Shown: positions 13,101-37,800 of the stretch, in pieces
Layout: every line of letters begins with the position of its first letter
Numbering within the stretch: position 1 is the stretch's first letter
NCBI GenBank assembly: GCA_000708835.1
Contig: DF236963.1
Coordinates: 310,001-374,000, forward strand
DNA length: 64,000 nucleotides
DNA from: Klebsormidium nitens
Lineage: Eukaryota; Plantae; Klebsormidiophyceae
Direction: 5' to 3'
Position numbers and translations under genes: made by a program
Notes under the pieces: generated by a model
Seen by the model: only the letters and a program-made list of their open reading frames with translations
Told to the model about the DNA's origin: nothing
The model's database searches: none

Positions 13101-16100
13101 CTATTGAGGCGATGGGCCCCGAACAGCTGCTGTCGATCCTGCCCCTCAATTTGGACGGCCCAGATTTGTCCAAGGCGAATCTGTGGCTGCTGCCAATCCT
13201 GGAGAAGCACATAGTGGGAGCGCGTTTACACTGGTTCGCCGACCAGGTGTTGCCCCTGGTGGGAACGCTCTCACAGCGGGCGGCGAAAGCGACGGCGGAG
13301 GGGCGGCCGATTGCGGCGCGAAACGCGGAGGCATGCGCGACGCAGGTGGGTGGAGAAACGATCTGCAAGGCAACCGTAACGATATGTTCTTAGGACATCA
13401 CGAATTACGAATTTCTTTCTTACGAAGAAAGAAATTATGCGCATTGGTTTGTTCTGGATTACTGGACTGCTGAATGGAAATGTGAGCAGTAGCAACAACA
13501 ATTGTCAGAAGTCAAAAGCGAAGTCAACCTCGGGCCTGTCCAACAATCGAAGCATTGCTCTTCCGTGGCTCCGAACTCATTGAGCTCTGATGAGCCAAAC
13601 AATTCTAACGACCCTGGTTCCCGGTAACTTCATAGGAAAACCCACTTCACATCCTGGGGAACTTGTGTTGAAAGAAGGCGGTCGATCGAGATGTACGACC
13701 TCCCTGTGGCCGCAGGCAAATCAGAGCTTGCGAAGGTCGGTGCCGACTTGTGGCAAAACTGACGGCCACCGGTCGTTTCGAGCAGACGCTTTGGAGACAA
13801 TCTCTCCGGAAAAACCAGTTTAGAACAAAACCCTCCCCTTCTCTCGCTGCAGCTGTGGGGCCTCCTTCCCGCCGTCTGCAACTACCCGGTTGACGCCCCC
13901 GACTCCTTCAAGTTCCTCGCAAAGCACCTCGGGACCGCTTTCAACGACCGTCCGGAGCTTCGGGGGGTAATCTCCTCCTCCCTCCAACACCTCATCAAAC
14001 AGAGCAAACAAGCGCGCGATGCCCCCGCCGGGGGGGCGGATGCGAGCGACTCCGAAACCCCCCTCAGCGCGTCGGTTCGACGGGCGCGCGCGTTTTACAC
14101 CCCAACAGTTGGCGCCGCGAACCTAGCGGCGATAACGGCGTTCACGAGAAACTTTCTCCCCCTCTTCTTCAATGCCTTCGTCGCGTCCCCCCCAGAAAAG
14201 CGCGCGGGAATTTTTGCGGCCGTCGAGGCGTTCGCCTCCGTAGCAGACCCGGCGCAAGTGCGCACTTTCGCGGAAACGATGATGGTCAAGCTCCTCGAAG
14301 CCACGCGCGACGCCGAGGCCCAAAAGGGGGGGGCGAAAACGCCCGGCGAAGCGGCCCCCATGAACGTGGACGGCTCCCCCGCCGCAACCCCCACCGCGCG
14401 GCGCTGCACGTTCATGGAGCTCGCCGTGGCGCTGACACCTGGCATGGATGACGTCAGCGTCGGGGCGCTCTACCGGGCGGCCCGCCCGGCGGTTATGGAC
14501 CCGGAGGCGCCCGTCCAGAAGAAGGCGTATAAGCTATTGGCGCGGCTCTGCGAGCTGCGGCCGGCGTTCCTACGCGCGCAGGGGGCGGACCTGTTCGAGC
14601 TCCTGATGACGTCACAGGCGGGGTGCGCGAGCGCGGCTCGGCGCGCGAGGCTGGCGTGCCTGCGCCACGTGGTCGTGCTGATGACGACGGAGGGGGCGGC
14701 GGAAAAGGACGAAGCCATCTCGGCGCTGGTGAGCGTTGCTCGTTTGGTTGCTTGCTGTCCTTCTCTCCCACTTTGTCTTCCCTTTTCTTTTGTTTCGCCT
14801 GGAGTTTGCGGTGAGCGCCGTTGTCAGGCGTGCGTTTGCTTGAGCGAGTGTGGCATCAATGAAAGACGTGCGTGCTTTTTGTTCCCGCGCATAGATTGCT
14901 CTGAGCATGGTGGTTGCTTCGCCTTAATAGAGCATGTGAGATACCAAGCATAGGACAAGAATTCACTGCGAATATCAGATGCCAGGCATCCCCTCTATGT
15001 TGGCTTCCTTATTGATCCCGCAGCTGAACCTCTTGGTAGATTCCGGGTTCCCAGGTCGTTCTTAGATTTTGTGCCGCTTGTTCCTTTCTCGAAGATACGA
15101 ATCACTTACAGAACCGTTACCTTTTCCTCTTGCAACAGGTGAGCGAGATCATCATCGCGACCAAGGAGGTAAACGCTAAGACGCGCAACGCCGCGTACGA
15201 GCTTCTGGTGACCATCGCGCGTGCCGCCGAGAATCCGGAGCTGGGTGGCTCGCAGGAGGCGCTCGTGCGCTTCTTCGGTGTGATTGTGGGCGGTCTGGCG
15301 GGAAGGACGCCGCACATGGTGAGCTCGTGGCACCAAAGTTCCTGTTCTCTTCAAACATAGCCTAGCATTATTTTCAAACATGAGCAGCAGTCATTGAGTC
15401 CTCGGAGCTTAAGCTTGACCTTGAGGTTACATCTCTTGATCTCACTTTATAGCTGCTTGGACATGGAGTCTGACAAGGATTTCTTATTGTGAGCTCTGAA
15501 GCTCGTAAACCGATTGTTTCAAACCCTAAATGCAACCCCTCGTCTACCTCCGTAATGCAGCGCATCCGTAATCACGCTTGCTCGCCTGTTGTGCGGGGTC
15601 TTTACCCCTGCTCAGCGACATCTTCTTTTGCCAAACCTACAAGTAGCATGAACTGGTCAGCCTACGTTCTGCGACCTTCCACTTGAACTCCACCTCTCCG
15701 TCCGCTGATTAGCGCATCTTGGGGGCTCTGCTCTACCTTGTCTAAACCACCGAAAAGCATCACTCACCCGCCTGAGTCTTATAATTTCCTACCCTTGTCT
15801 CTTACCCCTGAGACCTCCGTCCGCAGGTCAGCCCGTCGGTGGTTGCCCTGGCTGGCCTGCTCTACGACTCCACCTGTTAAGATCCTCGAAGTTAAAGGTC
15901 TGTTAGCCTCATTCCTTGACCTCTTAACCTGCCTCTTGACGCTACTTCTCAACCTTGCCCCTATTCATTGCAGATCAGCGCATCGGTGGTGGCCCTGGCC
16001 CGCCTGCTGTACGAGTTCTCCACCACTCTGTCGCACACCATCCCCGACCTGCTGCCGTCCGTGCTGCTCCTGCTGCGCACCAAGTCGCGCGAGGTCATCA

Positions 16101-18099
16101 AGAGCGTGCTCGGCTTTGTCAAGGTGCGTATATCCTCTGTTTCCTGTTCTTTCTGGTCTAACTTTGTCTCTTGTCTCTTCTTCGTGACTTTCTCTTGCTT
16201 TTCTAATCTCTTACAAGTGTTGCTTTCCGTTCTGCCTTCTTCCTCTTTCGGGTCTGTGTCTGTAGGTATATCCCTAAACTTCTGCTGTTCCCAAATCTGG
16301 TCGTCGTTTCCCGTTATCGCCGGTCCCTCCATTCACAATCCACGCCTTCTAGGGCGGACTCACTGGTTCATGTGCAGTTTAGCATAACTTGTGTGTTGCC
16401 CCTTTTCTAGTCCCTGCCATAGACTTTGAAACGAAAACAAGAGCGACTTTATTCTTTAGGGGAGCAAGGCAACGATGAGTAGCAAACGAATGCGCTTGTG
16501 ACTTTTGCAGGTCGTGATTGCTCGTCTTCCAGCAGACGATCTGGTACCCCATCTGCCTGATTTAGTGGAGGGTCTGCTCATCTGGGCCGAGGACTCCAAG
16601 AACCACTTCAAGATGAAGGTGAGCCGCCGTTCCGCCGGAATTTTTCCCCTCACTGTTTGAAGCATGCGGGACACAAACTGGATCGCTGTAGGTGCATCCC
16701 ACACTCCGTCATTCGCATGGTAGGTGCCAGGTATGGGACGCACCTACAAATACATTCTCGGATTGTCTGCTCTATTCGTACTCGGCCGCTATGCCAGCCG
16801 GCCAGCAGATTGGTCCAAAAAGAAGCCGAATCGACCGTCGTTGCTCCCACTACAGTGAAGCTTTCGTAAACTTCTCTCTTGACCTTACTGTAAGTCATGA
16901 AGAACATACCTGCTTCGTTGAAGCCAGGCTTTCCGGTTCCTACCGGGTTCTTTGTTTTTGGCTTTCCTCTATGGAAGAAGGATCTGTATGGACGACCTTT
17001 CCATACCTTTCGCTTACACCTGGTATCAACCGGGCTGCGGCATTGTGCATGGGCGTCACCATTATACTTGCTGACGTCACCCCTTCGCTCGCTGCAGATC
17101 AAGGTCATCTTTGAGCGGCTCGTGCGGCGGTGCGGATACGAGGCAGTTGCGGCGGTAACCCCTCCAGCACATCAAAAATTGATCACCAACATCCGGAAAA
17201 CGCGGGACCGCCTGGAGCGGAAGAAGCGCGAGAGTGAGGTCGGTTCCGTCAAGAGCGGGGCGGAGTCTGCCAGGGGCGGAGCGGAATCCGTCCGGTCCAA
17301 GGCGCTAACCAGAGCGGCGACCGCGAGAAGGTCGGAGTGGAGCCACGGGGATGTGTTCTCGGACGATGACGAGGAAGGGTTTGGAGGTTTAAGCGACGAC
17401 GGTGCGACGACGGTCGGGGGCGCGCCGGGGGACGGAGTGTCTAGGGGTGGCACGCTGGCAACACGAGCGGCGAGGAAGGCTAGAAAGGTGCGGAGTCGCC
17501 TGCCGGAGGAGGACGAATCTGGGCCGTTGGATCTGCTGGACGTGCAGCGGACGCGGAGATTAATGTCGGCGCCCGGAGGGGGGAGGAGAGGCGAAGAAGA
17601 GGAGGGGGGGTTCGAGGAAGATCCGGAGGGGAGGCTGATCATTGAAGAGGAGAAGAAGGGACGGAAACGGAGGCGGGACGGGGACGAAATGGAACTGGAT
17701 GACGACGATTATATCGGCAGTCAGAGCGGGAAGAGTAATGCGCGGAGCAGGAAAGGGGGGGACGCCCGAGGGGGAAAAGCGAAGGGGGAGTCGAAGGTAA
17801 ACCTGTCGAACAAGGCGCGGAAACTGCAGGACGGGAAGAGGGGCTTTGCGATGGGCGGGGAAGAGTACCGGGCGGGCAAAGGAAAGGGCGGGGGCGACGC
17901 GCGGGGGAAGAAGAAGCTGGAGCCGTTTGCGTATTGGCCGTTGGATCCGAAGATGCTGAATCGGAGGGAGGGGAAGCGGGCCGACGCGCGGAAGGGAATG
18001 GCGGACGTGCTGAAGACGGGGAGAAAGAAGAGGGGGGTCGGGGTAGATAAGAAGCGGTCGGGGATAAAGAAGGGGCACAAGGCCCACAAAAGAAAGTAG
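10184..18099 (+). CDS. RRP12: RRP12-like HEAT-repeat ribosome biogenesis protein (NUC173 domain), 10 exons
   Basis: Exons 10184-10393, 10924-11211, 11594-11833, 12122-12680, 13032-13345, 13853-14728, 15139-15318, 15974-16123, 16511-16618, 17098-18099; phases consistent. Motifs NQHLCAV...PTATAYFAA, DARPKVRKRA, IGAAIEAMGPE..L..LPLNL, LWGLLPAVCNYPVD, QKKAYK.L, EIIIATKEVNAKTR..AY, KSREVIK..LGFVK, KLITNIRK, GGDARGKKKLEPFAYWPL. Confidence 0.93.
10597..10605 (-). promoter_or_regulatory. Possible telo-box (AAACCCTAA) in RRP12 intron 1
   Basis: Exact TTAGGGTTT on the + strand. Telo-boxes are known near the 5' ends of plant ribosome-biogenesis genes, but a single 9-mer could be chance. Confidence 0.25.
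15555..16025 (+). repeat. Junction-echo array of the acceptor/start of RRP12 exon 15974
   Basis: Copies start at about 15555, 15708 and 15827 (GTCAGCCCGTCGGTGGTTGCCCTGGCTGGCCTGCTCTACGA vs real ATCAGCGCATCGGTGGTGGCCCTGGCCCGCCTGCTGTACGA). Confidence 0.85.
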
Positions 18100-26308: not shown

Positions 26309-28200
26309 GGTACCCGATTTTAACTGCGTAAGGTTGTACCCAGGCAAAGCAGAATGACTTCATGAGTAACTAGTTGTGGGAAAGCTACTGCCGGGCGAAG
26401 CGACACCGGGCGAAAAGTGCCCAGCATGAAAGTCTAAAATGATGCCTTGTCATGCCCGGCCGACGAGGCTCCGGTTAGGTTCCGCAAGATGCGGTTGGCG
26501 AAGACTCAGCGAGCGGGCCTGGTGTCCACCCGCGGCCGCGCTCGCGCGGGCCACCGATCGCCGTCGAGTGACCGTCCACTGATGTTCGGTACGGACGCTC
26601 ATGAGGGTACGCTCATGCCATTTATATCCTGGCCCGGATTTGCCAAACCCACTATTCAGCTAACCCAAGGTGTGCAATTTTTGCGGCTTCAAGTTTTTCT
26701 AAAGGCTTTTGCAAGGCACCAAAAAAATCCACTTCCCCTCTGGATAGAGCATACCTAAGACAGTCCAGAGATCCAGACGAGGCCTTGCATGTGTCAAACG
26801 TGTGTCACACAATGCAGGAAGAAGAAGGAGATAGAACTCCGCTCATGAGGGTACGTCCCGTCACTAGTGACCACTTCGAACTTGAACGCGTGCACACCCG
26901 CGGGAATCGCGCATAAAACGTGGGAATGTTCAGCGATTGTAAGTACCGTGGCGTCCTATTGTGAATTCCATGCATGCACAACCGATTCAATAACAAGTTC
27001 ACCCTCAACGGACCACCGTCCAATAAGGGACCCGCCAATTCATGATCCACGCAACTATTGCCGAGTCTGCAGCAAGGAATCATCAAATACGTACAATAAC
27101 TCATTGATCTCAAACGTTCGAGTGCCAAAGCTCTGGCCCACGCAGGATGGCCGTCTTATATACATTCGATTAGATTTTTAAGTCACATAGATGTCGAATG
27201 CACGGATGACCAACTTATCACACCCGTACCCCATGGCGCCATCCAGATGCTCAATGACACATATCGGGGTCACTAGCTCTTTGACAAGAAAGGACGTCCG
27301 TTTCTCCAACCGATTGCACGGGATCTATAGCTGTATGACCAGAACTAGTGCCTCCACGACTACACCGAGTTTATGTCGACCACGGAGTCACCTACAGTGC
27401 CTGATCGGTACCATGTGCAAATGAGGACAAAGGCCCATGCATGTCCTGGTCGTGTTGAATTCAACGTCGCAATCTTGCACCATGACCTTTCTTCTAAACA
27501 ATTTATGTTATTGGAAATGAGGAATACAGACAAGTGCTTCAATCCGTGTAATCAAGCATCAATCGCTTGAATCCATTGTTGGAAGGGCCCAAATGTATCT
27601 GTCTCAACGTGTATTGACAGCTCCCACTACGAGTAGCGACCCTTGCTAAGTTGCCCAACCCACTTCAGGCTGTTATAGGCAAGCTGCATTGACCACACCC
27701 GACCAAAATGTACAACCTCAACCTTCGACAATTGTCTAGTCAAACCATTGAAAACAGCTCTCTAAGCAGTGTCAATTTAGTCTTTGTACAGACCCCTCTA
27801 AGAAGAAAAGGCTCTCGTCTGTTTGCAATGGGCGTGACTTATCGAGCGGAAAAGGGGCGTGCGTTTCAATCCTGAAGTCCTGCCAGCCAAACGCCCCTTA
27901 CACTACCTAAAGCGTTGCAAGCGGATGCGTGCATTCTGTCCATGTCCCGACCAGAAGGCTTGCTTGCCCAGGGTCCGGCTATCAATTGTGCGAGCTCAAC
28001 ACCACAAACTACGAGAAGCACCAGCCCAAAAGCCGGGATGTTTCTGCGCACTTAGTCATCCATTTGACTATCCATCTTGTTCCTTGCACCTTTTAAAAGA
28101 GCCTGGACCAGTCACACCTCTAGATTGCATCCGCTTGTTCTCCAATTAGCCTCCAAACATATTCATGCCGCTGTAGCAGCACAACAACAAAGCTTCCTGC

Positions 28201-31200
28201 CTAACCCGACGACGGAAAAGCACTGAACAGCGTCGCCCACGCCATCTCGTCCCCCGGCAGCAACTCATCATCCCCCTCGTCTTCGCCCGGTAACAGCCAC
28301 AAGGGCTCCAGCGGGTCCGCCGGCCTCGGCGCTGTGCCCGGTAACCCAGGACCGACCGCGGAAGCGCTCCACGGCATCTCGGATTTGCTGCCCAGAAACG
28401 GCGACCGCGCTCCGCCTCCTGCGGCCGCACTTGTGACGAGGCCAGTCCAGCTGCGGCTGACCCTGGTCTTCTTTACCGGCTTGGCGTGTGCGTCGGGGTA
28501 CATCCAGGCGGCGATGTCGTCGGGGGTAAGGCCGGGGAAATCGTGAGGCGACAAGTCAAGGCCGACGTCCGAGCCGTCGTCGCCCAGTTCGGAGCCCAGG
28601 TGCTCCCAACCTGAAAACATTTACGAGTTCAGGACTCGGCAGTCAAACCCGATGTATCGCTCTGAAAACCGGGGGTTTGCATAAGCCGGAATCTGTACCT
28701 TGTGAAGTTAAGAAGCAGACCAAAAGAAGACGTCTGAAACACCGATCAAGCACCTTGCGATCCCCCTCGCTCATCACGGTCACCTGAGAAGGGCCTGCGG
28801 TGGGCGCTCCGCTTTTTCCCTCACTGCTGGCTTACAGAACTTGCCCGGCTGGGTTTGGTCCGAAACCTATCCCACAGCTTGTTCCGAGATGCGGTCAAGC
28901 CATCAGAACAAGGTTTAACTCTCCGATATTTTTAACGCTGACTCGCTCAAACAAAACGCTGGGTGCAACCAGACAATCACTCAGGTTGGTAGTAACGAAG
29001 TCACGCTCGTCCCCTCAGGGACACCGGCTTGGTTTCGCAAAACAATGCGTCGAAGTCGACGACGATCGAAGATGAGAGCTGCCTTGCCGAGGCGTCTCCA
29101 GGAGGAAAGACAACGCGCTGGCCTGAGTTTCAAAAGCAGGAGATGCAACAATAATGGTACCTGAGATGGACACGTCATCGTCCAAGGGGGATCCCCCGAA
29201 CCTGTCCGCCTTGCGCCAGCTGTTGCTTGAAGCGGTGGTGGAGGCCGGCGACTCCCCGGGGGAGCGGTTCCGCATGGGCACGTTGGGCTCGTACTGCTGC
29301 ATCCTGCGAGAAGCACGAGAATGGAAGTCAGCACCGTGCCGTCGACTACTTGGAAAGCTACTCGAGGTCTCTTGGGAGCAAGATAGTAGGAACTTGAATG
29401 TTAATGATTGTCAGCGCAAGATTTTCTGACCAATTAAGACAAGGTTGAAACGCCGTGTGCGAAGTCATTTTCTGCGAGAATGCGGCCACCCGTTTCACCC
29501 GTCTTCGAGATCAATTGAGCAGTTTGCTCGATCACAAACGGAGCGGTGATCCATCCTTTGAATGGATCTGCGGTAAGATGCATTGTCGGCGATCGATGCT
29601 TTAAAACGAAATGCAAAACAAATTTTTCTCTGAGCCTACTTTCATTGCACAGCGACTAGGCTCTTGTTCGAAATACGTCGCACATGCCGACCAGACAGAG
29701 TCATCAAGACCAGGCTGCAAGAGTCGCTCACTTGTACTTCTCGCACCGAACTGCTCCAGGCAGCTCCTGCAGCAGCCGTGCCACCGTCGGGTTTGCAAAC
29801 CCGAAATACTCGGGGCCTGCGGCAATGGGTGGCGCACTTTTAGTAACGCGTGACTCGATTTCGCATGTTAAGGTTTCCAGTCAACAGGCTTCTGTTGCTT
29901 GCAACGCAGACTGTGAGCGAATTATATCAGAGGATCCGTTTCAAAGCCATGCAAAGAAGTCGAAGCGCCGAGGTAGATGTCAGAAGAAAAGTGTTCCGTG
30001 CGAGGGTGCTGCGTCAGTTAGAACAACCGGAGACCGACGCTATTCGAGCAATTTTCTGATTGATGATCCAAGTACGGGCTCTGCAACGTCGATTTATCCA
30101 GTCTGCCTGCAACGAAAGGCTCTGCTCTGCGGTTGGCACAACCTGGAGCAGTCCAGCCATTGGCGAACCTACCAGAAACGTTTGCGAACGTCTTCTTGCC
30201 CCCCTCGTCCATGCGGGTCATAGTGACCTGCTTCACCACGGACGTCCAGACAGCGGTAGCGGACACGCCCACGATCGGCTCGTCCGGGTCGTCCTCTGCA
30301 GTATAGACCGAATTTCATCAGCAGACTCTCCGCAGCCAAAGCAACACGCGCTTTTGAAGACGCACCTCGAGATCGATGGGGGACGGAGCAGACTGCGGAA
30401 GCGATTCACAACAACCTTTGCCGTTCTGACAAACAGCGAAAACAAACTCACAGAACGCAGAAACGCCGAGCTCACTTTATGGCACGGCGTCTGTGGTCGT
30501 GGGGAGTGGCCGAGTTTGAGACGTCTTTCAAGGCGCAATATCCTGATCTTGCAAAGACACAAGGCTCTGCCTCCTGGCTGTAGATGCATCTTCTCGGCCT
30601 CAGCTTTCCTTGAATGAAATGGTTGAGTTGATGGTAACAGCATACCAGCCGTTAGGCGGAACTCAGGAGCGGCGCCTCCGTCTAGGATCTCGCAACAGTA
30701 CTGGATGCGCTTGTCCGGCTGCTTCATGCTGGCGTATGAGCGCATGCTCTTGAAACCTACGGGCCTGCGGGAGGGACAAAGACTTGATTCATTTTCGAAC
30801 TCCTTGTGAGCAGATTGGAATATGAGGGGTCAGTGCGTGCTGTATGTACCACCAAGCAGACGGCTTGTACGCACAAGCTGTCTCTCGAAGGGGGGGAGGA
30901 TCTGGGACAAATGCAAGAAGGAAATGGACGAAAGCCTTCAAGGTGACGTAAGGATACCGACAGGAATTCCGAAAGTGAGCCTCGATCAGTACTAAAGAGA
31001 ACCAAGAATCGTCAAGCATTACAATCAAGCGGCTTCATTGCTCTGTCCCGAATGGCGCAGCGACGATGGTACCACAAACGTTCACAATACGTACGAACTC
31101 AACACCCTTTCGCATACACGTGGTAAGGAACAAGAGTTGAAGCAATCGAGTCGAGAGGGCCTGCAGAAATCTCCGCTTCGACATTATTGGAACCAAACAG

Positions 31201-34200
31201 GAGGACCTTTGCTCGAATGTTTCAGCGCCACAACGACCGCAAAAGAAAGTGAACGCAGACTCGAGCATCTCACCACAAATACTTGTCGCTGTGGAAGGTC
31301 TGTCTGTCCGCCACGATCCTCCCCAGGCTAAACACCGTGAGACTGGGTCCCACTTTGACGGGCAAGATGGGGCGACCTCCCTGATCCCTAGGCACCTCCT
31401 CGCACCGCCTCCGCTTGTTGATGTGAGAGTGGCTCTTGCGTCGGTCGAGTGATCTGGCAGGCGAGGGGGGCGGACAGCAGTGCCGGACTGCATCAGTAAA
31501 AAGGAGCTTGTCTTAGCAAGCATTTAAGCGCATGCACGTGCCAGCAGTGACCCTAAGCGGGGGAAGCAGGAACTGGATACTTGGAATACCATAACAGGCG
31601 TAAGCAGGGCGGAAAACGAGTACACCAAGCCGTTTGGCCTGCCTTCCCTTGCTGGCGCAGCGCTCTACAGCAACAGCCGCTGCTCGCGTGGACTCCCCAC
31701 TTCCACTAGGACCACTGATCGCGCAACATACACTCGTCATCTCACTAGATGCTTCGTTAACCCTTATGACTTCAACGTCCCTGTCCGTTGACCAGTAGAC
31801 TGGTGCTTTCAACCTTCGGATGAAATCTTTGAACAAGTTTGGATGAGATCCTGAATAAGTTTGGTTGACTTAGTCGTGGATGGGTACAGTCGAAAACCAG
31901 TCCTGGCAACCGCGACTCACACTGCTCCGGCATCTGGCGGAAGTCGATGGCCTGCGCCAGCTGGCGGTGCGCATCGGAGCTGTTCTTGAAGAGGCGCGAC
32001 ATCTCCCAGAGCTCCTTCCAGAGCGAGCGGTACACCTCCTGTCGTGCCTTCGGCGACTCTGCCAGCCTGCACAGAGAAACCTCCGACACTGTCAGGACAG
32101 GCCTATGATATCCCCTTCAGTGAACAAGTTGCCTACGATTGGAGTGAAGGCCTGGTCAGATGCAACCACACTTTGACGCTAGATCCTGGACGCTAGACTT
32201 TGACGTGCATACGCCCCACTTCGAGCCTCCACGAAGCACTGGGTTACCAGTAGAGTCTTCGTACAAGCTTCGCTTCTGCGACTTTGAAACCAGGGAGTCT
32301 CTGCGTGAGTCCGATCATAACCATTTGCAATCTATAGAAGACACACGCTGCGGGAAAGAAGAAACGTCAAAGTGACCGACTTTCAGCTAGCTCCTCAGCC
32401 ATCAAGGACGAGATGAGCCAAAAGGCACTCAGAAGGGTACCAATAACTCTCACAACGTACACAATAGAAAAGGAACGGATGATCAGAGCTCCAAACAACA
32501 CATGCTTCCACCTAGCCTCAAGAAAGTATCCTGCAAAGCTTATGGAGCAAAGGGCCTGACCTTGGCAGCAGCTTGTGGTCGTTTGCCTGCGTGCACTCCC
32601 ACAGCTTGCGAATGCACTTCTCCGCCCGGCACGCCTTGTCCCTGTCCAGGTCGTCCCCAAGGAACGCCCGGGTAATCGGCCTAAGAAGCGCTGCCAGCTC
32701 AGCGCTCTGCTGCAGGGGGGACCCCAGGATTGATTGCGCCTCGGTAGCCATGGACGATGGGTTAGGGATAACCAGGGGTTTGGGGAGGAAAGCCCGAGTA
32801 AACTCGGTGGGCTTGGGGGTTTTGAAGCTGTCCATTCGAGGGAGAGCTGGGGAACTTCGGTCAGGGACTGACACACTCAGGTGGTGGTACAGCTGGGAGG
32901 GGCTGGGTGAAGGGGAGGGAACGTCACGCACTCGCTTCCGGCTCGTTTCGCTGTCCTGACGGGCCAAGGAACCGGGCACGGGGGTCGGTGCAACGACATT
33001 GGCACTGCAGGATGAAACGAAGGGGTTTGGAGGAGTGATTCGACCTGTGGCTGCAAGTGTCAAAGTGCTGCATAGTATATCCTCGAAGTCGGAATGTTGC
33101 ATCTGATCCTTTTGTAACAAGTCAACACATGTTCCCCTTGCAGAGACTGGCCTTGCACGAATCAAACAAACACTGTTGCATTGTCGTCAGTATCCTTTTG
33201 AAGAGAGAATCTGTACAAGCAGAAGATGACACGGAAAATGCCGAAGTCTGCTTGAAAAGAAAAGAAGTTCGTAACCATGTATGGCACTCGACTTACCGAG
33301 CTCTTTTCTCCCGGGGCGTGCATTCCGCCACCTCCTCCCCCCAGCCAAGCCAGGCGGCCCCCTGCAGTTGGTGCAACCAAAGCCGCCCCTCCTGCCAGGT
33401 GAGCATGTGAGTAGCACAGGGGAGGGGCTTCTTCAGACCCCCAGCTACGCGCCTGACCGGCAGCTTCAGCAGGGGGTTGGATAGCACAGCCAAGCCGCCC
33501 CCCACGAGATGGCTGACCAGGTTTCTGGTTGGCATTGCCAAGGGGCGCTCTGGCACGGCAGCGTGAGACACAGCGCAGGGAAGGATGGGGACAAGGCTGC
33601 TGGCGTTGCCCCCGGACTTGGATGCAAGGGTGAGCTGGATTAGGCGCGTCTTCTTTTCTTCAACATCACTGTCTGCAGAGGGAAAGGAAACATGATCAGT
33701 TAGGCAACAAGGGTTGTCCTCTTTTCGACAATGTCACCGTTTAGATTAGGAGCTTGCTGTTGATTGAGTAGCAGAATTGGCAAGGAGATGTATGTCCACC
33801 AATCCAGTAGGAGGAAGCTCAGTTTACTTGGGAAAGGGGCTGGGGCGTTCTGTTCTTGAAGCCCTTTATTTTTGAGAAACTTGACGAGCAGAAAGTTGGA
33901 GACTGGCAAAAAGCGAGCAGGAACTGTGACCAAGACTGAAGATACAAGAGCAATGAGCACGATGTGCAGACTGAAAAGGTTTCTCAGACGCTTTTGCCCT
34001 GATCTCAGAGTTTCATGTCAAATCTGCATTCATGTGAAACAAGGAAAAGACACTGCACAGAAGTGTTGGTCTATGGCAGCTTACCAGTAGAAGAGCCCGA
34101 ACCGCTGGGGGTGCGATGCCTTTCCCCCAGCGTAGGTGACAAATCATTGTCACGTCTGACAATAATGCTGATACTGGCACTCGCCTCCCTTTCCTGCATT

Positions 34201-36344
34201 CAAAAGTCTTACTACTCTTTCGCCCTGGACACCAGGATATATTGTAGTAGAGATACTCCTAGCAACAGCTCTTGTGCCATGGGGAGAAAGCTGAACGAAA
34301 TGAAGCACAGAATGACAGGAGGACCGCACGATGTGACAGAGGATAGGCAATCTCAGCAGAACATGTCAATAGTACGTCCCTGGAAGCGCAAGCTCGCAAC
34401 TACTTGATGAGCAGCTCGTCATACCCAGCAGTCAATCCTAGATACTTCAGAATGGGGCACCTCACCTGGTTGAGCGGGCTAATCACAATGGTGCACAGGT
34501 CGAGGTGCAGGTGCGCCATACTCCTGAGGCAGGGCGCAACAAGTGCCGCCGTCAAGGTAATCTTCTTAATGCCAATTGGCCCCGCAGCTGAAGCAGCCAT
34601 CTCCACCTTGCCAAATGCGCTCCCGTCTTGCAACGCTGCCTCATCCTCTGCGCTATTCTCGGGGTCCCCCATCAAGCGTGGGGCCTGCTTGCTTCCCTCG
34701 CCAGGGAGAATACTGAGCACATTAACTTCGCAGCTGGCTAAGCTTGAGTGCGGGTCTACCGTTCTGCCCGCTTCAAGCAGCAGCTTGCTGATCAAGTCAG
34801 GAGAAAGCGAGCCCTGGTCTGCCTGTATGAGGATAATCTGGCCGCTAACAGGCTCTGCTTCCCCCACAGACGAAGCGCCAGAGCTTGTATAGGCCACGTT
34901 GCAAAGGCTCGCCCCCAACTGCGCAGGAGCTGACGCCGTGCGTTGCTCAACCAACTTGCTGCTTGACTCAACCGGCCTCCCATACCGTGACTCCAAGCAG
35001 TCTTCTTGCAAACCACACCCTTCTAAGGCCCTGTTCAGCTGGGAACTACCTTGGCTACCCTGAGATGCTCGGCTGTTCCTAGATGTGCTCCTCTCAAGCC
35101 CCTTTTTCTCGGTGCCTGCGCTCATCTCTCGCTCGCTGCCCTGCTCAGAGCCACTGGAATGCTGCGGCTCCAGCAGCGCGAGCAATGCTTCTTCTAAGGA
35201 GCCTTTGATGTCTGCTGAGGCTGGAACAGTCTGCTGAGGGGAGCTAGCAAGGCCGTCCACAACCTGCAAGAAATAAGTGCCAGTGTTGGACCGTTTGCCT
35301 TTCCCAAATTTGCTAAGTTCTGTTGAATGCTTTCCCAGATTCTCAGTCTTCTCAAGCCGAGAGAAAAGGTAACTTATAGCATACAATACGCATCCTGAAA
35401 TGCAAGCATATACGACCAGGCTGTCATACAAGGGACAGATACTGATGGAGGTTGCAAATTGACATTCTTCTGGTCAGAAAGACCCGCAGCCATTGAGACC
35501 TTTGGCTGCTTTGCTGGCCCTTTTGACCGGATGCTGGATGAACATTGATTATCCTGCTGAGTGCTTGCATCAGGTTCTTGTCTTGGGGACTCAGGCTGGC
35601 ATAAATCCTAGGGAGGAATCTTGACAGTCACGATGAATTGATATACTTACTGCTTGCAATGACTGGTCCCCAGACCTCCAGCTTGTAATCCTCTCTGGCA
35701 ACTCTCCAGCTCTGAAAACGCAAAGCTGCAGCATGGAAGCATCAGAGGTAAGAATCAGAATAGCTGCCAGTATGTTGCATCAACTTTAACTCTATTACTC
35801 ATGAAACAAGGAACAGGACAGAGCTCTAAGCCTCTCAATAGCCTTATAGAATTTGCCTAACGCTGAGTGAGAGATCCAGCTTGTTGATCCAGGCAGGACT
35901 TAGCCCAAACAAAGAAGATGACTGCCCCTTCCAACTCGAAATTTTGATAGTAAGAAGCTTTCCCTTACATTATGCTTCTCAGATTTCAATGAGAAGAAGA
36001 TCCGGACATAGTCCAGCATGGCGGCATTGCATTCGGTGAGGATGGTCTTCTGGAGCGCAAATCCAAGGGTACCTGGAAGAATGGAGTTTTAGTCCCATGC
36101 CCCTTGAACCCCATTGAGCAATCTTCCAACACCAGCATCATTCAAGAATGTACTTGATCAGCAGAATTACAGCACTGTGAGGCGTACCTGGGTCACTTCT
36201 GCAATCAAAGATCTATCAAGGCAAGGCTCAACGAGCCAGGTTCTCTCATTGATACTCACTTGTGGAGCATGATGTTCCCGCTTCCTCACGCATCTTCAGC
36301 CCATTATCAAGAATGACCACAGTCCGCTTGGTAAAACTATCCAT
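28201..36344 (-). CDS. INTS13: INTS13/Asunder (Mat89Bb-family) protein fused to a C-terminal FYRN-FYRC (TBRG1-like) module
   Basis: Start MDSFTKRTVVILDNG (36344), then QKTILTECNAAMLDYVRIF, GQIILIQ...CEVNVLSILP, AHLHLDLCTIVI..LNQ|EREASASISIIV, NLVSHLVGG...THMLTWQEGRLWLHQL, SDFEDIL, and RQEVYRSLWKELW...SSDAHRQL are collinear with recalled INTS13 motifs. Exons 32066-31921, 31487-31274, 30764-30646, 30295-30173, 29816-29732, 29303-29161 and 28610-28201 join in frame and give LPVKVGPSLTVFSLGRIVADRQTFHSDKYLWPVGFKSMRSYAS...YCCEILDGG.APEF...EDDP...SATAVW...SGPEYFGFANP.V.RLLQELPGA (FYRN/FYRC). A few junctions between 33100 and 35900 are unresolved. Confidence 0.78.
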
Positions 36345-37800
36345 TGTGAACCAGCAAGCAGCAGCTTGATCCTTTAATATTGCTCTCAAGCACAATGCAC
36401 GCACTTCAGCTGCAGAAACATGTCAGTGCCTGAGGTCAGATCTTCAGGACTTTGATCCAACCGTCGCGGTCTTTACAAAGCATTCTATACAATCAACTGA
36501 TCATCATGGAGCAAAACAAAGGATATGTACGAAGGGCCTTTGAAGCAAGCTCACTGTTGCAGGTCAACACGATCAATGGCCACAAATGCTCCTGGGCAGA
36601 ATCATTGGAAGGTCAACACTAACACTGTCCACATTCGACCTTGAAGTGTGACAATTGAAACTCACTTGCTAAACAGACGTGTGATGAACTTCGTGAGCAG
36701 GCTCTGCCCCATTTCCTTCAGTGATAGGGACCTTCTGCACGAACCGACTTTGGTGACCTTTTGCAAAGTTACCCTGCGTCTCAGCTAGATATCAATGAAC
36801 AAAGAACGAAGACCAGTATGCCAGTCACTACCACGCCCGAAGGAGGCATCTGTGATTGAGAGCTGCTGCCTGTTCGTACTGTAGGCAGGCCCTAGACAAA
36901 TACAGCATGATTGCTCCCAAATTGAATCATCATATAGGAAATCGTTGGCCCTTCTCTTCAGAATTGATGATACAGAATATGAGGGAGGCACCCCATAGAA
37001 CTAAAAGATTCACTCAAACAGCCCTGTCCTTTCGAGCAAGCTGAACGCATTGCAAAATTTTGAAACACCAAGCGAGGAAGTGGGAGGGAATTCCGAATCG
37101 CTGTGTACATACCTACTCACTAGCTAGCCGGGCCTTCTGCAGAAAGATTCCACATGACCCCATCTCACTTTCCCTGGATTTTGCGTCACTTCTCACCTTT
37201 TCCAACTTTTCATCCACACAGAGGGCTCGACCTGAGCGAAGCATCGAGCAGCATCATGATTCAGGTGTGAAAACCCGTGCATCGAATCGTCGACCGCCTT
37301 CTCTCGACTTCTCGAACCAAAGTGTTTGGCCCTGAGGTGGCCGACAAGCATATCATACCGTAGTCGAAATGGTCGCCGGGTGACCGCGCCGCTGCCGGAA
37401 TGAAGGGCGACAAGTCGTGTTTCCGGAGTGTTATGACCAGAGCGAATTTACACAGCAGAAGAATCTGGAATCAGCTAGTCTTCCGCACGGTTCAGAACAT
37501 CGGATTACGTAGACGGCGGGATGCCAACCTTCGACCTAGTTGGTGACTCAACTATCGAGCGTATGACGAGTAGCTGTAGGAAGAAAGAACCGGCGCTGAA
37601 GTACGTAACTACCGTATGTTTGAACACAGCCAGAGCTAAATCCTGAGTGCCGTACTTGTGCGCTGCATAAGCCGTCTTTCATTCCACGGCACTCACGGGG
37701 CATTTTACCCGGTTGAAAGCATCGGTTATTGGTTGCGTCACCAATCATGATGGCAGCTACATTCGCGGAGCCAATCGCTCGAAAGCAATGCGTACCGGTA

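Follow-up and report, generated by a model that had tools for sequence, protein, structure and literature searches.

In the alga Klebsormidium nitens, a FYR protein of TBRG1 type whose large conserved N-terminal part is possibly INTS13-like

On the minus strand of contig DF236963.1 from Klebsormidium nitens (assembly GCA_000708835.1), a long coding region and a set of exons for FYR domains lie next to one another at 28201–36344 of the stretch that we analysed, which spans positions 310,001 to 374,000 of the contig, is 64,000 nucleotides (nt) long and is called the window here. A sequence-only reading of the window had described this locus as a homologue of the Integrator subunit INTS13 (Asunder) fused to a TBRG1-like FYRN/FYRC module. 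Two questions are raised: whether the two parts form one gene, and whether the upstream part is INTS13. The fusion itself stood up, with a spliced joint and a single open reading frame, while the INTS13 identity of the upstream part is not established, one sub-threshold profile match pointing to it. The encoded protein carries a FYR module of TBRG1 type behind a large conserved N-terminal part, which is possibly INTS13.

The gene model was built from minus-strand sequence 28001–36600, in which stop-free pieces were listed and exons then assembled. It comprises 14 minus-strand exons with a coding sequence of 3231 nt, giving a protein of 1076 amino acid residues (aa) and ending in a stop codon TAG at 28203–28201. 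Every intron of the model has GT..AG ends and a pyrimidine-rich acceptor. The exons, and the intron between the two parts, are as follows.

Exon 1, 36260..36344, minus strand: 85 nt; ATG at 36344–36342, the first in-frame ATG after a stop; donor GTGAGT; conserved in the related loci L002 and L003 (see below)
Exon 2, 35969..36072, minus strand: 104 nt; entered in phase 1; junction identical in L002 and L003
Exon 3, 35651..35725, minus strand: 75 nt; conserved in L002 and L003
Exon 4, 34466..35263, minus strand: 798 nt, aa 89–354; conserved blocks around a low-complexity insert of about 105 aa
Exon 5, 34085..34193, minus strand: 109 nt; contig joint 33672/34085 and a loose contig end at 34196
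Exon 6, 33297..33672, minus strand: 376 nt, aa 391–515; contig joints; 81–83% identity to L002 and L003
Exon 7, 32561..33004, minus strand: 444 nt; contig joints; Pro/Ser-rich basic first half, highly conserved second half
Exon 8, 31921..32066, minus strand: 146 nt; final exon of the N-terminal part; contig joints; no stop codon
Intron 8, 31488..31920, minus strand: 433 nt; GTGAGT...TGATGCAG; separates the two parts
Exon 9, 31274..31487, minus strand: 214 nt; basic linker with a KRRR cluster (aa 713–753) and first half of FYRN; contig joints
Exon 10, 30646..30764, minus strand: 119 nt; second half of FYRN
Exon 11, 30173..30295, minus strand: 123 nt; first half of FYRC; contig joints
Exon 12, 29732..29816, minus strand: 85 nt; second half of FYRC; contig joints
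Exon 13, 29161..29303, minus strand: 143 nt; start of the C-terminal tail; contig joints
Exon 14, 28201..28610, minus strand: acidic tail and stop codon TAG at 28203–28201

Whether the two parts are joined in a message was judged from public sequencing runs, 20 of which, from seven studies, contain the stretch; four of these were compared with it over 28201–34200. Three runs (X1, X5 and X6) come from organism A, each from a different study, and the last (X15) comes from organism B, so that four studies are represented. The runs are labelled only "RNA?", and they behave like RNA, with depths of 0–25 in intron bins while exon bins reach tens to hundreds. The evidence consists of contigs of 31-letter words rather than molecules, in which rare forms can be missed and isoforms joined. 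Nine introns are spliced in all four runs, with borders exactly those of the model and the expected CT..AC ends on the plus strand. Exons 1–4 lie outside the compared range and are based on splice consensus, on reading frame, on collinear conservation in L002 and L003, and on the loose contig end at 34196, which occurs in all four runs and matches the exon 4 donor.

The joint between the two parts, 31487/31921, is one of the nine and is present in the contigs of all four runs. Exon 8 ends ...ATG CCG GAG CAG T at 31921 and is followed by GTGAGT; the acceptor TTACTGATGCAG stands just before 31487, where exon 9 opens with TC CGG CAC TGC. The codon split across the joint, T|TC, gives ...MPEQ-F-RHCCPPP in phase 1, just as had been read from the sequence. 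The separation of 433 bp between the parts is likewise borne out by the length of intron 8, and the five further phase-consistent exons that had been announced are found, six exons following the joint in all (exon 9 and five more) and remaining in phase to the TAG at 28203–28201. In the run from organism B a single contig of 4403 nt (record 7) starts in the 3′ untranslated region (UTR), takes in exons 14 to 5 and continues past them. Its positions 1–640 lie beyond 28201, so the 3′ UTR is at least 640 nt long, and the length of the contig is compatible with the 3231-nt coding sequence plus a 5′ UTR of about 530 nt. Contigs of about 2.6 kb in X5 and X6 run from the 5′ UTR to exon 8 and include 30 nt of exon 9. 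It weighs against a single full-length message that short-read contigs cannot prove the presence of all 14 exons on single molecules. We conclude nevertheless that the locus is one gene, spliced into a message whose single open reading frame joins the N-terminal region and the FYR module.

The case that would have told against the fusion, splicing of exon 8 to an acceptor near 31851 (T|GA), was looked for; no such joint occurs in the contigs of the four runs, which can miss rare forms, and the acceptor was rejected as a splice site. Contigs that retain intron 8 are seen in three runs at low depth only (15.8 versus 870, 3.7 versus 55.4 and 7.7 versus 52.7, or 2–15% of the spliced form) and are probably pre-mRNA. 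As a separate observation, in the unspliced contigs over 31458–31950 retention would append 49 codons after ...MPEQ and then a stop, the product being without the FYR module. One contig, in run X1 only, matches exon 10 as far as 30730 and continues with 255 letters unlike the window; it might stem from a paralogue or an unusual splice form, or the contig might be chimeric.

These retained introns, together with the depth of the 3′ exons, which in three runs is somewhat above that of exons 6–8 (71.8–84 versus 55.4, 78–131 versus 52.7 and 650–964 versus 637), are what can be said for two neighbouring genes, one INTS13-like and one encoding the FYR module, of which the joined message would be a minor read-through or conjoined transcript and whose main products would be separate. 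Against this, the joint is as deeply covered as the exons on either side of it, the unspliced form amounts to only 2–15%, and contig depth cannot rank the parts of one gene. Comparison with related loci bears further on the choice.

When 1.84 billion representative proteins were searched exhaustively with exon 4 by phmmer, only P0001 (86% identity) and P0002 (55%) matched. The contigs of these two matches, and one found through exon 6, provided four loci, L001–L004, of which L002, L003 and L004 are metagenome contigs assembled independently; L003 equals L004, and L002 and L003 share about 82–89% DNA identity. Both L002 and L003 carry all 14 exons in the same order. Splice-aware reconstruction placed the introns at the same codon position and in the same phase in L002, L003 and the window (13/13), with an open frame through the joint in both relatives. 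The equivalents of intron 8 measure 754 nt in L002 and 1375 nt in L003, and are alike in phase and in the donor GTGAGT in all three species. The reconstructed proteins are about 68% identical in amino acid sequence to the window protein, with conservation in the N-terminal part highest in exon 6. An 11-nt micro-exon in intron 1, at 36198–36188 between AG and GT and keeping the frame, was considered and rejected: exon 1 and position 36072 connect in phase without it, in agreement with L002 and L003.

Synonymous divergence (dS) from the window is about 1.4 for L002 and L003, and the ratio of non-synonymous to synonymous divergence (dN/dS) lies between 0.05 and 0.31 in every segment with estimable dS. 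It is 0.05 for the FYR domain, 0.08–0.10 for the linker, 0.06–0.23 for exons 1–3 and 5–8 and about 0.3 for the tail; in exon 4 the synonymous sites are saturated against the window, and the ratio between L002 and L003 is 0.23. These ratios, with intron positions and open frame unchanged, show that purifying selection has retained the fusion in at least two relatives. Its known range is three closely related genomes: three word searches for further relatives returned only fragments of the two known ones, and two metagenome scans for further relatives found nothing. The 1444-nt Logan contig that holds P0001 (L001) carries an exon 3 homologue at its positions 10–90 on the strand opposite to exon 4, a flip that is probably a fold-back assembly artefact.

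In none of the three species does exon 8 contain an in-frame stop. Exon 9 has no in-frame ATG; upstream of its acceptor the frame is closed within 9–18 codons with no ATG between, and the first Met downstream of the joint falls inside FYRN, again in all three species. Because exon 9 lacks an ATG and the frame upstream of it is closed, the FYR module has no start codon of its own and cannot be made alone. The fusion is obligate, and old relative to the three species. With neither a stop in exon 8 nor an ATG or open upstream frame in exon 9, with the position, phase and donor hexamer of intron 8 conserved and with the linker under purifying selection, the reading as two neighbouring genes is largely refuted, and we regard it as very unlikely. 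Still less credible, to the point of being negligible, is an artefact through chimerism, whether of the genome assembly or of the transcript contigs. Logan contigs, whose building blocks are 31-letter words, can indeed join isoforms, but the joint recurs in all four runs, which come from as many studies and carry two organism labels, and the exon order recurs in L002, L003 and L004, metagenome contigs that were assembled independently.

The part of this single gene that lies downstream of the joint can be identified with some precision. Each FYR domain is split across two exons, and every half scores above the Pfam cut-off, which is 24 bits for FYRN (PF05964) and 21 bits for FYRC (PF05965).

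FYRN, exon 9: model positions 2–31 of 60, 28.7 bits (Pfam)
FYRN, exon 10: model positions 32–60 of 60, 39.2 bits (Pfam)
FYRC, exon 11: model positions 6–54 of 84, 28 bits (Pfam)
FYRC, exon 12: model positions 44–80 of 84, 34.9 bits (Pfam)

In the protein FYRN occupies aa 754–813 and FYRC about aa 824–892; the two are contiguous, being about 10 residues apart. Exon 10 matches the FYR domain of human TBRG1 (2WZO) with E=3.3e-8 over 37 residues (TBRG1 residues 35–71), and the next FYR protein, KMT2D, with E=0.61; because of this difference the description "TBRG1-like" is correct. These matches identify the C-terminal module as a FYR domain of TBRG1 type, with FYRN and FYRC both complete and contiguous, and the hidden Markov model (HMM) check proposed with the sequence-only reading has, for these two families, given scores above cut-off. 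Upstream of the FYR pair lies a conserved basic linker with a net charge of +7, whose KRRR cluster looks like a nuclear localisation signal, and downstream of it an acidic tail (aa 893–1076) with a net charge of −13. No JmjC, SET or PHD domain was found in this gene in a Pfam scan of the exons.

The identity of the 712 residues upstream of the linker is more difficult to settle. The N-terminal exons of the window and of L002 were searched one by one against 24,736 Pfam families, among them the INTS13 profile Mat89Bb (PF10221; cut-off 25 bits). Mat89Bb matches exon 8 of the window alone, over model positions 520–554 of 689, and is the only family matched by any N-terminal exon. Since this one family is also the one proposed beforehand, the match is improbable by chance. 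Among PDB sequences, human INTS13 (chains 8RBX_m, 6SN1_A and 8PK5_A) is aligned with exon 8 over residues 523–557 with E=0.36–0.58 and is among the best natural matches of this exon. Human INTS13 is built of a VWA-like domain, a β-barrel, a long linker and a helical domain; its ordered part ends at residue 565 and is followed by a disordered C-terminal tail, residues 565–706, that carries the cleavage-module-binding motif (PMC7347597). The exon 8 match falls in the helical domain, whose end at 565 corresponds to the point where exon 8 stops and the FYR part starts. The N-terminal part is also of similar size, 712 residues as against 706 for INTS13, and we infer from PMC7347597 that its order of segments (a conserved region, a long Pro/Ser-rich stretch and a conserved stretch resembling the INTS13 helical domain) fits the INTS13 layout. 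The fit of the Pro/Ser-rich stretch, which occupies aa 516–600 and precedes the conserved C-terminal block, is only loose; the second half of exon 7 is presumably helical. Apparent short collinear matches of exons 1–6 to the human INTS13 sequence were treated as a lead and not as a test.

Several results weigh against an INTS13 identity. The Mat89Bb match scores 13.7 bits (E=0.026), below the cut-off, and the orthologous exon 8 of L002 gives no Mat89Bb match in Pfam. In a single-sequence search of PDB, designed helical bundles and importin-α match exon 8 as well as INTS13 does, and a three-species profile of exon 8 ranks importin-α (E=0.006) over INTS13 (E=1.3–1.5). Exons 2, 3, 4, 6 and 7 gave no INTS13 or VWA match in Pfam or, by phmmer and hmmsearch, in PDB, and the exon 4 search among 1.84 billion representatives reached nothing beyond the two close relatives. 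AlphaFold2 models were unusable, with a predicted local distance difference test (pLDDT) score of 35.2 for exon 4 and 33.4 for exon 6. Profiles of exons 4 and 6 retrieved no INTS13, VWA or Ku chain from PDB, and three Atlas feature searches with N-terminal exon segments gave no usable match. Two further candidates were set aside: importin-α itself, the match of exon 8 being taken as helix-level chance similarity, with no ARM-repeat likeness in the rest of the protein, and a plant leucine-rich repeat receptor matched by exon 3 in PDB, taken as chance. The Mat89Bb check that had been proposed was thus carried out at exon level, and the single match at 13.7 bits against 25, lost in the L002 exon, leaves homology neither confirmed nor refuted.

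A rival reading of the gene makes its product a TBRG1/NIAM-family chromatin protein with no tie to Integrator. The long N-terminal region would then be either peculiar to the lineage or a member of another family not yet recognised, and the exon 8 match a chance similarity of amphipathic helices. FYR/TBRG1 is, after all, the only significant homology in the protein; the N-terminal exons are blank in Pfam, PDB and Atlas save for the one sub-threshold match; that match is not reproduced in L002 and is overtaken by importin-α in the profile search; and the only relatives of exon 4 come from two close species. On the other side stand the prior proposal of the sole family matched among 24,736, the collinearity of the matched position with the helical domain of human INTS13, and, in our interpretation of PMC7347597, the resemblance in segment order; moreover, an exon-by-exon search is underpowered for a remote homologue, so that the blanks weigh little. 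We consider a protein without any tie to Integrator a serious contender, though less likely than not. With moderate confidence, resting on the sequence comparisons above, we assign the N-terminal 712 residues to a very divergent scaffold of INTS13/Asunder type, an identity that is plausible but unproven.

The protein can be set beside several known systems. FYR domains are protein–protein interaction modules of chromatin proteins, and the algal domains belong to the same Pfam families, FYRN and FYRC, as those of plant JMJ14-type demethylases and of MLL/KMT2. In MLL, FYRN and FYRC are far apart in the protein and hold the two cleaved halves together. The algal gene differs from these proteins in lacking JmjC, SET and PHD domains, and its FYR domain is much more distant from that of KMT2D (E=0.61) than from that of TBRG1 (3e-8). 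Human TBRG1 is a protein of about 411 residues with a short N-terminal region. As in human TBRG1/NIAM (2WZO), FYRN and FYRC are directly adjacent in the algal protein, with about 10 residues between them; unlike in human TBRG1, they are preceded by a conserved region of 712 residues and followed by an acidic tail of 184. With metazoan INTS13 (Mat89Bb; 6SN1, 8RBX) the algal protein shares the weak alignment of exon 8 to human residues 523–557, the similar N-terminal size and a comparable order of segments (conserved region, long unstructured linker, helical end). It differs from metazoan INTS13 in giving no significant profile or structure match in the exon-level searches, and in that the tail with the cleavage-module-binding motif (residues 649–694) is replaced by the linker, the FYR domain and the acidic tail.

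Taken as a whole, the evidence makes it fairly probable that one gene encodes one protein of 1076 residues consisting of a divergent INTS13-type region, a basic linker, and a TBRG1-type FYR domain with an acidic tail. Such a protein is probably nuclear. Metazoan INTS13 pairs with INTS14 and binds nucleic acids, and a motif in its C-terminal tail holds the INTS4–9–11 cleavage module (PMC7347597). In the algal protein the FYR module and acidic tail would occupy the place of that disordered tail and would serve as the docking end of the protein. The FYR domains of JMJ14 bind the transcription factors NAC050/052 (PMC4659397); the docking target of the algal FYR module might similarly be a chromatin or transcription-factor partner, or else it might be other Integrator-like parts. 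Most simply, the protein would be a scaffold with an exchanged docking end, through which a nucleic-acid-binding module of Integrator-like kind would be linked to a partner in chromatin or to a transcription factor.

The Rosetta-stone interpretation that had been attached to the locus, a link between Pol II termination or snRNA processing and chromatin regulation, can be taken further. The N-terminal part would then be a true INTS13 orthologue, TBRG1-type FYR proteins would work physically with the nucleic-acid-binding INTS10/13/14 module of Integrator, and the algal FYR module would have taken over docking from the cleavage-module-binding tail of metazoans. We consider this conjunction unlikely. 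The literature searched held no link between TBRG1 and Integrator and none between INTS13 and algae. Were it true, an association of TBRG1 with INTS13/14 would be predicted in animals too. If the N-terminal part is INTS13, a subunit of the INTS10/13/14 module would be placed in a green lineage; to our knowledge the Integrator-like (DSP) subunits recognised in land plants are an incomplete set. The same identity would give a first hint of the binding partners of TBRG1-type FYR domains, the molecular role of TBRG1-type FYR proteins being poorly understood. If it is not INTS13, the locus represents an ordinary lineage-specific combination of domains around a TBRG1-like protein and is mainly of interest for annotation.

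The surroundings of the gene vary among the related loci. In L003 and L004, open reading frames of a Harbinger-type transposon (DDE_Tnp_4 and Myb_DNA-bind_4; L003:2852–4479) lie upstream of the orthologue. Nothing comparable is present upstream in L002, where instead an RRP12-like gene with an RRP12_HEAT domain (L002:1–4600) immediately precedes the fusion gene on the same strand. The counterpart of the RRP12_HEAT gene in the window is at 14126–17214 on the plus strand, about 11 kb past the 3′ end of the fusion gene and on the opposite strand to it. The placement of the RRP12-like gene thus differs between L002 and the window, which points to a local inversion or rearrangement between the species.

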